Positions 42,929 through 47,463 of a stretch of DNA of 64,000 bases are shown here, one piece after another. Position numbers and translations under genes: made by a program. Under the pieces are notes generated by a model. That model was not told the DNA's origin, searched no databases, and saw only the letters and a program-made list of their open reading frames with translations. The first letter of the stretch is position 1, and every line of letters begins with the position of its first letter. Source of the DNA: Vitrella brassicaformis CCMP3155 (lineage: Eukaryota; Protista; Chromerida); the NCBI GenBank assembly GCA_001179505.1, contig CDMY01000312.1:62001-126000 (forward strand), written 5' to 3'.

Positions 42929-45900
42929 ATGGGGAATCAGCAGAGTGACGGCCACGCCCACCCGGTGACGCACAGCTGCGTGCAGGGGCTGCAGCTCAAC
43001 GAAACTCCCGTAACCACACACACACACACACACACACGATGATCTGCCTCTCACATAGATCCGATGTGTGTGTGTGTGTGTGTGTTTGTTGGTTCAGCCT
43101 CTCGTCCCTCCAGCAAGATCAGCAGAGTAGGCTGGCTGCGTCGAGATCACCAACCATTGCGACACACAGACAGCCCTGATCTCTCTCCCTTGTTGTTTTT
43201 CGTGTGTCAGTGACCCTCGACTGGCTCGCGAGACGGTGCAGCTGGCACGGCCAGAGGGCGAGGCTGCCTCTGCCGCAGACGGGGGACACCCACGCGAGCA
43301 TAAAGACCAGCAAGGAGAGGGAGAGGGGAAGGGCGGCGACGGTGCCCACTCTGAGCCTCCCGACGACGGGTCTCCCAGTGACAGTGCTGCTGTGGCTGTT
43401 GCCGCTGCTGAGGGTGGTGGCACCATCAATGAGGTCCGCGAGGTACAGCGGAAGCGATACGAACAATTCAAACGGTCAGTGAGCAGTGACTGACCAGAGA
43501 GAGATCGACCCTTGTGTTGTGTCTGCTCTGTGTGCCATTCATGAGTGCCATGTCATGTGTGTGTGAGTCAGGTCTCAGCGTGGGTCAGCAGCAGCGTCCG
43601 GAAGTGCGTCCGCGAGCAGCACGGGCGACCCTCCTCCGTGCTACCCCACCACCTACCCCCCGCCCCTCAACAGCCTGCCGCCCAAGCCGGTGCCGGCCGT
43701 GCTGCGGCAGCCAGAGGCAAACCTGCGGGAACTCGACACCCTGTGGATCAGGCCTTACAAGTACGGAAGGAATCGACAGAGAGAGAGAGAGAGAGATGGC
43801 TGGGTGGATGTGTGTGTTGTGATGGTGTTTGTTCAGGACATCTGAGATCGATGCGCTGTTTGAGGACAACCAGCACGACCAGGAGGTCAGTGGGTGAAGC
43901 GAAGGGGAGGAGCTGATGGGATGGAAGACGGCGTGGCGTGATGTGTCGCGTCGCGTGTCGCGTGTCTTTGTGTGTGCAGCGTGTGCAGCAGTACCTTTGG
44001 GACACCTACGTCAAGTCCTTCTTCAGCGAGCAACTCAGATACGTTGAAAGCGGTCAGTACACAGCACACTGCTCAGTGCGTGAGCAGACAGATTCCCACG
44101 TGTGTGTGTGTGTGTGTAGGTCAAAACCTGGAGATGTGTCCGGCGGGTGTCGAGGAGTTCCCCTGCACCTTCAGGATCACATGCTGCTCACCGTGGGACG
44201 GTAGGGAAACAAACCATGTCATGCCGGACACAGCACAGCAGCCACACGTTGGTGTGCCGGTGCCGGTGTGGCACACGCTGCAGGGGTGGTGACTGCCTCA
44301 ACGGTCTTCCATCTCATTGGGTGGGGGGGGGGGGGGGGGGGNNNNNNNNNNNNNNNNNNNNNNNNNNNNNNNNNNNNNNNNNNNNNNNNNNNNNNNNNNN
44401 NNNNNNNNNNNNNNNNNNNNNNNNNNNNNNNNNNNNNNNNNNNNNNNNNNNNNNNNNNNNNNNNNNNNNNNNNNNNNNNNNNNNNNNNNNNNNNNNNNNN
44501 NNNNNNNNNNNNNNNNNNNNNNNNNNNNNNNNNNNNNNNNNNNNNNNNNNNNNNNNNNNNNNNNNNNNNNNNNNNNNNNNNNNNNNNNNNNNNNNNNNNN
44601 NNNNNNNNNNNNNNNNNNNNNNNNNNNNNNNNNNNNNNNNNGGGGTGGGCGCATCTGCGGAAGGAAAAGATGACGATCTACTCGCGCCTTCGTGTACTCG
44701 TGCATGTCTGTGTATGTGTCTGTGTCTGTGTGGCAGTGAGCCCTTGATCCACCAGCCGGCCGAGAGGCTCCACCTGCTGCCCATCGGATCGCCGCCAGGT
44801 CGGTCACACACCACATCCACACCATCATCGACCGACACACCCCTCCCTCCATCGTGGGTGTCTGGCGTCCGCTGTGTACTGTGCCCATTTGCAGCGCTGG
44901 CAGGTGTGCCGGACGACCAAGCGGGCGCGGCGCTGTTTGCGAGATACATCAAGCCCTTCTTCAGGGCAAACACCTGCAGACACCTCATCGAAGGTGAGTG
45001 GCTACACAGGCATCAGTGACAGACAGACAGACAGACAGACGGGCTTCGCGCGTGTGTGTGTGCGCGTGTGTTGCAGGTGAGACATTGGTATGTGACGACG
45101 TGAGGTTCAAGGTGGTGGCCCTGACCCCCCCACAGGGCTTCATCACCCGGGAAACGGTGGGTGCACTGAGCCAGGCAGCCAGCCAGCCGCTTTCAAATGG
45201 ATTGTTGCTGCTCCTTCCCTTTGCCCATCACAGCGCATCCACATGGACGGCACGCCTCTGAGCTATTACGAGCTCGTGGAGTTCCAGCCAATCGACGTAC
45301 GCCAGCAGGGCCACACAGAGCCAGATGATCAGATTGTGTGTGTTGCACACTTGCAGGAGTCGCTGCCTCCGGCGATGAGGGGCGAGCGATACAACGGGGA
45401 CGCGCAGGACCAGGTGAGCACACGCACAGAGTCAGTCAGTAGGCGCGTGACATGCCAGGCTGTCACGGTCTCTTTCTCTCTCTCTCTCTCTTTCTCTCAG
45501 CTGTTCGAGCTGTACCTTCGGCCGCATTACGAGGGCAGGGAGTGCATCGTCAGAAACGGTCTGACACGCCCATGGCCGCACACACAACCACTCCGTCCGT
45601 CCGTCTGTCTGTGTGTGTGTTTGGCTGCCCTGCCAGGTGAGGAGATTGTGATCGACAAGGTCCGCTTCAAGCCCATCACTTTCCTCCCCAGACTCAACGG
45701 AATCGGTAAGGGCAGCCCAGCAAGCCAACGAGCCATTCCCTCTCTCTCCTTCCCTTCCGGGGGCCAATTGATAACTAACGTCGATGTGATGCGCGGTAAC
45801 AGGTGTGGTGGGTGCCAACACGGCCATCACGTGTGCGCAGCACACCATGTCCGAAGAGGCTCTCCGGCAGCTGCAAATCAACGAAGATATGAGACTCGCC

Positions 45901-47463
45901 ATGCAGCTGCAACAAAGAGAGGGTACGGTACCCTACCCTACACACACGCAACCCCCCACACCACACCCTTCTCTCATTTCCCCCATGGTGTGTACCTATG
46001 CATTGCTGCAGGCGGCTTGCGTGGTCTGCGCATGATGGGCCGTGGTCGTGGCGGCCCCCACCCGCCGGCAGAGTTCCCAGGTCTGGTGCGGCTGGGGTTC
46101 CCCGGCAGCTCCAGCGGCATCAGCGACATCGGCGCGTGGCTAAGGGGCACCATACAGGTGCACACACACACACACACTCAGGCAGAAAGGCATGCAGGGA
46201 AGGAGACAATTAATGGGGCCAAACGTATGTCTCTGCGCATCTGTCCTTGTGTGTGTGTGTGTGTGTGTCCAGCAAATGTATGAGACGTTGCCGCGTGACG
46301 ACCCCCGGCGCGCCCGTCTGGCGCTGATACTCGAGGAGTTCCCGGACGACACCAACTTCGATATCGATGTACGGTACACACACACCATCTGACGCCTGTG
46401 ATCGAAGTCGCCCCTGCCCACACGCGTGTGTGTGTGTGTGTGTGCGTGTGTGTGTGGTGCAGACTTTGCAGCGGTTCCGCGAGCGGCTGGAGTTCAGAGG
46501 GGCCTCTGAGCAGGACATTCAGAGGTGGGTGGGTGAAGACGATGATGCGACCAAGGCCATGGCATCTCTGTGTGTTTCTGTTTGGCAGGCGGACCATCAC
46601 GTGGAATTTCGCCAAGCCTGCACACCCGCCTCCATCGGAAGACATCGAATCAGACGACCGGCTCACGTAAGGACAGCACACACACGCGCCCCCCCACCAT
46701 CATTCACTCGGCTGTTGTTCTGTTCTGTCAGTTGTCGCATATGCCTGGCGCCATTTGAGAACGACGAGCTCATCCGCTGCCTCCCATGCTGTGAGAAAAC
46801 ACCTCACAACACACACGCGCCAGAAAGCAGTGCGACACACAAGCGGTCCTCCTTCCCTCTGTGTGGTGTGTTGTCTGTCTGGTCCGGTGTGTTGGGTCGG
46901 TCAGTCCACCGGTTTCACTCGACGTGTGCCACGAGCTGGCTGCGGCAAAGCAAGGTCTGCCCCATTTGCAAGATGGCCATCGACGCCAGCGGCACGTAAG
47001 CAAACCACACCACACCACACCACACCAGCACCCACCCTCATCATTGAGAGTGTGTGTGTGTGTGTGTGTGTTCCACAGTGACACCAATCCCTTCGGTGAG
47101 ACCCCCGACCTCCTCGGCGCACCTGCACCTACAGCAGACCAGCAGCAGCAGCCAGCGGCACCATCAGCAGAAGAAGGAGACGAAGAGGAGGCCGATGCGT
47201 CCTCCGACGACCAAGCAGACTCGCCCCCCAGCTCAGCACCCCACCTCCCCTCGTCGAGCAGCGCCTCTCCCCCTCCCCCTGTCCCTCCGCCGCCACCCCC
47301 ACCACCCGGCCTGCCGCCCACTCTGCCCGACCAGCAGCCATCTGCCGGTGGTGGTCGCCAGGCGCGCGTGCTGCCCGATGAAGAGGTGGCAGCCTTCTTT
47401 GGCGAGGAGCCGCCGGGCATGCCGGAGAGGCGGCGGCCGGCCAGGGGGAATGAGTTCCTCTGA
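42929..47463 (+). CDS. RING-H2 E3 ligase with N-myristoylation motif, three p97/CDC48 N-subdomain-like repeats, MIU-like motif, and NPF/Pro-rich tail
   Basis: MGNQQS start. Repeats of the pattern [ILV]..LPI...L(F/W)..Y(V/I/L)(K/R)..F...G.....F(K/R)....P.....T. EDMRLAMQLQQRE. GASEQDIQR..TCRICLAPFENDELIRCLPC/VHRFHSTCATSWLRQSKVCPICK. Last exon DTNPFGETPDLLG...EFL*. Confidence 0.8.

Follow-up and report, generated by a model that had tools for sequence, protein, structure and literature searches.

We analysed a stretch of 64,000 nucleotides from Vitrella brassicaformis CCMP3155, an alga-like alveolate and free-living relative of apicomplexan parasites (GenBank assembly GCA_001179505.1, contig CDMY01000312.1, positions 62,001 to 126,000 of the forward strand). 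This whole stretch, hereafter the window, has a G+C content of 58.5% and six 300-N gaps, and is part of an assembly of 72.7 Mb in 1064 contigs; all positions below count from its first letter unless another contig is named. On its plus strand lies a gene for a predicted RING-H2 ubiquitin ligase (E3) that carries, upstream of the RING finger, three tandem units akin to the C-terminal lobe (Nc) of the N-domain of the unfoldase Cdc48/p97. The coding region (42929-47463, plus strand) opens with an ATG at 42929, closes with a stop codon ending at 47463 and comprises 775 codons plus the stop in 23 exons, at 42929-43009, 43098-43126, 43211-43474, 43572-43760, 43837-43885 and 43980-44052 (exons 1 to 6), 44120-44200, 44284-44320, 44737-44798, 44895-44993, 45077-45156 and 45234-45296 (exons 7 to 12), 45357-45413, 45501-45558, 45637-45705, 45803-45922, 46012-46157 and 46273-46368 (exons 13 to 18), and 46463-46524, 46589-46666, 46732-46790, 46905-46995 and 47079-47463 (exons 19 to 23). 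Every intron of this model has GT..AG ends, and a check of frame and phase gave a single open frame without any internal stop. The spliced product equals, letter for letter, a database protein of V. brassicaformis CCMP3155 (775 residues, here P0001), which carries the label either 'unnamed protein product' or 'RING-type E3 ubiquitin transferase'. The borders of intron 3 are fixed by cDNA at 43474/43572. Reading in frame from the preceding stop, the ATG at 42929 is the first to occur; cDNA contigs begin at or upstream of 42800.

The catalytic end of P0001 is its most conventional part. The RING-H2 finger (residues 598-640; 46665-46972, plus strand), which is split by intron 21, is the sole Pfam family on the protein, with a zf-RING_2 (PF13639) score of 43.7 bits (cut-off 27.3). 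A regular expression located the eight C3H2C3 ligands at residues 599-639, spaced as C-x2-C-x14-C-x-H-x2-H-x2-C-x10-C-x2-C, and the usual Ile, Trp and Pro stand at the positions that contact the ubiquitin-conjugating enzyme (E2). On its sequence, P0001 is a predicted RING-H2 ubiquitin ligase. The linker before the finger reads ...G-x-S-x-x-x-I..., which we take to resemble that of RNF38, RNF44 and Praja-like ligases. The canonical finger is common to P0001 and other zf-RING_2-type RING-H2 E3s, whereas the recognition part of P0001 appears to be a Cdc48-derived beta-clam array instead.

This array is made of repeat 1 (residues 172-267; 43711-44318, exons 4 to 8), the most diverged of the Cdc48 Nc-like units, repeat 2 (residues 268-351; 44319-45242), the unit closest to p97, and repeat 3 (residues 352-443; 45243-45840, exons 12 to 16), again a Cdc48 Nc-like unit, all on the plus strand. 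The three repeat strings quoted in the original prediction, as well as the RING-H2 finger at the place given for it, can all be read in the sequence; the string given for repeat 3 is present save for one stretch, quoted as IVRPGEEIV, that in fact reads ...IVRNGEEIV.... In local alignments compared with 300 shuffles, repeats 1 and 2 (z = 10.3) and repeats 2 and 3 (z = 12.6) are clearly related, none of the 300 shuffles attaining their score; the pair of repeats 1 and 3 taken alone is weak (z about 1) and is joined through repeat 2. Eight columns are invariant across the three units in a MAFFT alignment. The codon of one and the same invariant Gly is interrupted by a phase-1 intron in each repeat (introns 6, 10 and 14), and a second phase-1 intron, placed in another invariant Gly, is common to repeats 1 and 3 (introns 7 and 15). 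From these shared intron positions we infer that an exon block was duplicated in tandem at the DNA level, and this long after the Nc-coding segment had parted from a Cdc48 gene.

The kinship with Cdc48 was found by profile and by shape. When a profile of the three repeats was run against 177,635 PDB sequences, the best 60 matches were Cdc48/p97 without exception (60/60), over residues 126-189 of the N-domain and with E-values from 1.3e-7 to 3e-6; moreover, repeat 2 matched the exon of Vitrella's own Cdc48 with a BLASTP E-value of 4e-4 in a single comparison. As judged from the profile E-values, the repeats are homologous to the Nc lobe. An AlphaFold2 model of repeat 2, for which the three repeats alone served as alignment, reached a predicted local distance difference test (pLDDT) of 82 and a predicted template modelling score (pTM) of 0.72, with the succession of elements E-H-E-E-E-E-E; a beta-clam is built of one strand, a long helix and another four to five strands. 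Searched with Foldseek against the PDB, it returned N-domains of p97/Cdc48 as its top 50 of 50 matches (E 6e-7, template modelling score (TM) 0.70, 28-30% identity). Similarly, the independent model of this protein in the ESM Atlas superposes on CDC48_2-bearing clusters with a TM of 0.76-0.77, and such clusters were also reached by a shape search with the model of repeat 2, the Atlas searches giving a TM of 0.74-0.77 overall. The repeats are, according to these predicted structures, beta-clams, and the CDC48_2 fold put forward in the original prediction was borne out by the modelling. Its broader proposal, a stand-alone triplicated CDC48_2-like module on an E3 devoid of ATPase, is likewise in line with the PDB profile, the predicted fold, the zf-RING_2 match and the Pfam result that neither CDC48_N nor any AAA family matches P0001 even at E 10. 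An exon-by-exon Pfam scan found the split RING alone, below threshold, the exon pieces being too short for CDC48_2. Matches to a PRP19-related protein and to gamma-crystallin, obtained when exon pieces were searched against PDB sequences, were discarded as noise that came partly from translated intron.

Such a composite protein might be suspected of being an artefact of annotation or assembly, in which a repeat gene and a RING gene would have been fused across a gap or by read-through. A 300-N gap does lie within the locus, at 44342-44641, inside intron 8 (44321-44736, plus strand), which bears a poly-G run on the left edge of the gap; that gap, however, falls between exons 8 and 9, inside the repeat array rather than between it and the RING. 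The ends of intron 8 are GT..AG and its phase fits: exon 8 ends in phase 2, with the GT donor just before the poly-G, and exon 9 provides the third base to give ...FHLI-G-EPLIH.... Runs X1, X6 and X7, which come from at least two studies, contain spliced contigs and are therefore cDNA: thirteen GT..AG joints of the model were seen in them, as against none in the DNA run X3. Between 43760 and 44892, contigs X6#10 (1338 nt) and X7#13 (1371 nt) each contain exactly 299 letters, the sum of exons 5-9 in the model (49+73+81+37+59), and contig X1#2 (452 nt), from a separate study, obeys the same length count (59+37+15). Since the lengths of the cDNA contigs equal the sums of the exons, the gap must be intronic, with no hidden exon and a continuous frame. 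The joint 44320>44737 itself is missing from the list of joints because the poly-G edge was masked, and the continuity of exons 8 and 9 is based on these lengths, in three cDNA runs, together with P0001. Intron 8 is not crossed by any contig of the DNA run X3, so that its span in the model is provisional.

Downstream of the gap, contigs X6#10 and X7#13 reach from exon 1 past exon 10, the former to about exon 14; the joint 45557>45636 connects exons 14 and 15 in cDNA, and contig X6#12 (3307 nt) takes in exons 15 to 23 and extends past them. Overlapping cDNA contigs thus form a chain from exon 1 through exon 23 that ties the repeats to the RING. What speaks for a fusion, besides the gap, is that this linkage is a chain, none of the listed cDNA contigs spanning all 23 exons alone, and that a 135-nt contig (45531-45665; runs X6 and X7) still contains intron 14, which some molecules retain; against it stand the overlap through 45557>45636 up to exon 23 and the single open frame without stop, so that we regard an artefact as very improbable. 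No split transcripts were seen among the cDNA contigs, and the claim that repeats and RING belong to one gene despite the gap stands. Taken together, an architecture of triplicated Nc beta-clams, homologous to those of Cdc48/p97, on a RING-H2 E3 that has neither the N-terminal lobe of the N-domain (Nn) nor an ATPase is in our judgement highly probable. What is unusual is this combination, an isolated Nc lobe, triplicated and mounted on an E3 without ATPase; RING-H2 fingers and the Nc beta-clam are each known. No description of an architecture joining a RING to a Cdc48 Nc lobe was found in the searchable literature.

Compared with Cdc48/p97/VCP, the Vitrella protein shares the beta-clam fold and sequence homology of the Nc lobe (CDC48_2, PF02933), whereas its lobe is triplicated, sits on a RING-H2 ligase and comes without the Nn double-psi barrel and the D1/D2 ATPase rings. 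This difference bears directly on which partners the repeats may bind. The UBX, UBXL, VIM and VBM partners of p97 occupy the cleft between Nn and Nc, while the SHP box docks on the far side of Nc alone (PMC5042407). Since P0001 has no Nn lobe, that cleft does not exist in it, and docking in a known manner is structurally possible for the SHP type alone. Mimicry of p97 to capture UBX, UBXL or VIM cofactors, as originally proposed, is therefore unlikely on this reading of the sequence, the cleft that these partners need (PMC5042407) being absent.

The residues of p97 that contact the SHP box are R113, H115, L117, F131, F139, L140, V166, V176, I182 and H183 (PMC5042407). In repeat 2, R278, H280, L282, F303 and F311 correspond to p97 R113, H115, L117, F131 and F139, and V335, I350 and H351 to V166, I182 and H183, I344 replacing V176. 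Relative to Vitrella's Cdc48, repeat 2 has 8 of the 10 contacts identical, plus the V176I exchange, at an overall identity of 33% (hypergeometric p 0.0014); its one clear mismatch is at the position of L140, where Vitrella's own Cdc48 does not have a Leu either. Repeats 1 and 3 each have 3 of the 10 contacts identical, with overall identities of 28% and 31% and hypergeometric p values of 0.58 and 0.67, matches which, judged from these counts, are background. Because repeat 2 retains the surface by which p97 holds the SHP box, docking of SHP-box proteins is the most likely of the modes considered for it; as the most specific hypothesis drawn from the alignment, it is nonetheless put forward tentatively, being in our judgement less probable than not.

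Candidate ligands of this type are encoded in the Vitrella genome, in a Ufd1-like gene and in a p47-like SEP gene. The Ufd1-like gene (L022; G000:C480:16457-19543, minus strand) reads ...L-F-G-G-T-G-V-R-L-D-G-K... at the canonical SHP position, and a complete SHP box, F-D-L-F-S-G-S-G-H-H-L, lies in a downstream terminal exon of the same strand, six residues before the stop, which is a candidate part of that gene. The p47-like SEP gene carries ...M-F-T-G-E-G-R-T-L.... A complex prediction of repeat 2 with the exon that carries F-D-L-F-S-G-S-G-H-H-L scored 0.02 in a run in which the alignment was unused, and speaks neither for binding nor against it.

Another possibility is that the array serves as a generic recognition or scaffold module for a partner outside the Cdc48 system, for instance a lineage-specific membrane or cytoskeletal protein, its likeness to p97 reflecting origin and not function. 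The divergence of the units beyond Pfam detection and the loss of the SHP contacts in repeats 1 and 3 would agree with it, as would the fact that the searches gave no relatives displaying a conserved surface. However, repeat 2 retains three polar surface contacts (R, H, H) in addition to hydrophobic ones, which exceeds the upkeep of a fold, and we consider such a module unlikely.

The array could also read ubiquitin or ubiquitin chains, as does the N-domain of Ufd1, the SHP residues being then inherited structure. In this case a putative helix resembling the motif interacting with ubiquitin (MIU) or the ubiquitin-interacting motif (UIM), read by eye just after repeat 3 (residues 447-469, ...N-E-D-M-R-L-A-M-Q-L-Q-Q-R...; 45850-45918, plus strand), would make P0001 an E4-like or ubiquitin-primed ligase. 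The stretch D-M-R-L-A-M-Q-L-Q presumably resembles an MIU, a likeness treated here as a lead; across residues 440-600, no Pfam family scores. Apart from this helix, a ubiquitin reader would agree with a feature search in which the repeats fall close to clusters of UFD1_N2 and PEX-1N as well as of CDC48_2. The N-domains of Ufd1 (UFD1_N1/UFD1_N2) and PEX1 belong to the same fold superfamily and are language-model neighbours of the repeats; they differ in carrying both lobes, once each, without a RING, and have no significant match to the repeats in the PDB-sequence profile search. Against such a reader, every significant match, by sequence or by fold, is to Cdc48/p97 and none to Ufd1, the selective retention of SHP contacts in a single repeat would be left unexplained, and the ubiquitin sites of Ufd1 involve a two-lobed domain, while P0001 lacks the Nn lobe. 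A ubiquitin reader is, in our view, quite unlikely.

We favour the explanation that the locus expresses one 775-residue RING-H2 ligase in which the Nc array is a module for partner recognition, SHP docking being its most likely mode; as a whole, this explanation is reasonably probable. Under it, the N-terminal peptide M-G-N-Q-Q-S (42929-42946, plus strand), read from the sequence with G2 and S6 present, would probably bear a myristoyl anchor; it has the G2/S6 pattern of N-myristoylation signals, which call for Gly2, a small or uncharged residue 3 and Ser/Thr at residue 6, and myristoylation is putative. The RING would draw in an E2, and the beta-clam array would recognise the partners. Repeat 2 would most likely dock SHP-box proteins or SHP-like peptides (F-x-x-F-x-G-x-G-x-x-L; Ufd1, p47 and Derlin-type cofactors), and the ligase would then ubiquitylate the docked proteins or join them in acting on common clients. 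The MIU/UIM-like helix that follows repeat 3 may hold ubiquitin, and repeats 1 and 3, which are without the SHP surface, would probably serve another partner or a scaffold.

Several points weigh against this explanation. Pfam CDC48_2 (PF02933) gave no match at E <= 10, with P0001 as a whole or with each repeat alone, so that the units must have diverged, and the Pfam check suggested with the original prediction came out negative. The five AlphaFold models of repeat 2 had pLDDT values of 82, 62, 54, 52 and 42, the best one alone being confident, and a single-sequence AlphaFold model of residues 165-450 (pLDDT 33) was set aside. Among the eight SHP-site residues retained in repeat 2, four are hydrophobic and could be explained by folding; furthermore, the SHP site was picked after the alignment had been seen. 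The searches for relatives yielded no alignable orthologues that would attest a conservation of this surface across species. Finally, the myristoylation signal and the MIU-like motif come from motif reading alone.

A bolder version of the favoured explanation would make P0001 a lipid-anchored 'Cdc48 decoy' ligase, whose free-standing Nc lobe with an intact SHP pocket diverts Ufd1, p47 and Derlin-type cofactors from the unfoldase, ubiquitylating or sequestering them; we deem it rather unlikely as it stands. The choice of cofactors by the N-domain of p97/Cdc48 is central to endoplasmic reticulum-associated degradation, to the extraction of proteins from organelles and to work on chromatin. If the decoy existed, the supply of adaptors to Cdc48 would be regulated by mimicry of its own N-domain, a form of control that, to our knowledge, has not been described for the p97 system. 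If the pocket is real, repeat 2 would provide a minimal SHP-binding module of natural origin and point to an E3 that communicates directly with Cdc48 adaptors; the SHP-box receptors that we know of are all the unfoldase itself. The locus would in addition offer a clean case of a domain lobe excised, triplicated along with its introns and reused.

Relatives of P0001 were sought at several levels. Word-seeded protein searches at E <= 10 retrieved P0001 itself alone among proteins of 426-1356 residues sharing 5-residue words (one such search covered proteins of 217-691 residues), which does not prove absence. An exhaustive HMMER search with a 157-residue stop-free stretch, half of it translated intron, returned P0001 and one low-complexity match and is hardly informative on distant relatives, and two metagenome scans gave no confirmed relative. 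The Toxoplasma ligase CSAR1, found in the literature, was rejected as an unrelated RING protein of 1822 residues (PMC10083718). In the ESM Atlas, a cluster that comprises 51 RING proteins, each about 582 residues long, has a model that superposes on the full three-repeat region (TM 0.70 over 251 residues); because this RING cluster has the same predicted shape, a small family of such proteins is probably present in environmental data. Within the Vitrella genome, the repeat profile found this locus alone and no second one, and a search with PF02933 reached the true Cdc48 locus only. Three ordinary Cdc48-type Nc exons lie elsewhere, at C603:79215-79370, C22:74972-75127 and C275:248399-248521; their identities to the first of these are 100%, 81% and 54%, respectively. 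The C603 copy looks like the canonical cytosolic Cdc48, the Walker motifs being intact in L001.

Other features of the gene are of lesser weight. PPxY-type motifs bind the WW domains of NEDD4-type ligases, and one of them, P-P-C-Y, is found at 43633-43644 (residues 146-149) in the disordered N-terminal part of P0001, of which residues 1-171 are of low complexity by composition; its occurrence by chance in a proline-rich stretch is equally possible. At the other end of the protein, the last exon (47079-47463, plus strand) encodes an acidic, proline-rich tail (23% Pro, with a proline run at residues 711-730) before the stop codon, and an exon-piece Pfam scan gave no family match above noise for this tail. 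The introns, the gap-bearing intron 8 excepted, are all short and of similar size (60-115 nt), and many of those within 42929-47463 contain a (CA)n/(GT)n microsatellite. At 45592-45624, in the (GTCT/GT)n stretch of intron 14, numerous contigs of the DNA run that have nothing else in common start or end, which marks this stretch as a simple repeat of dispersed type. A run of about 20 G at 44319-44341 adjoins the assembly gap on its left side; being masked, it is covered by neither DNA nor cDNA contigs, and it may be either a genuine G-tract or an error of sequencing. Beyond the coding region, cDNA contigs continue past 47600 for 360-395 nt or more, and one of them reaches 2063 nt further, which points to a long 3' untranslated region or to overlap with a neighbouring transcript.

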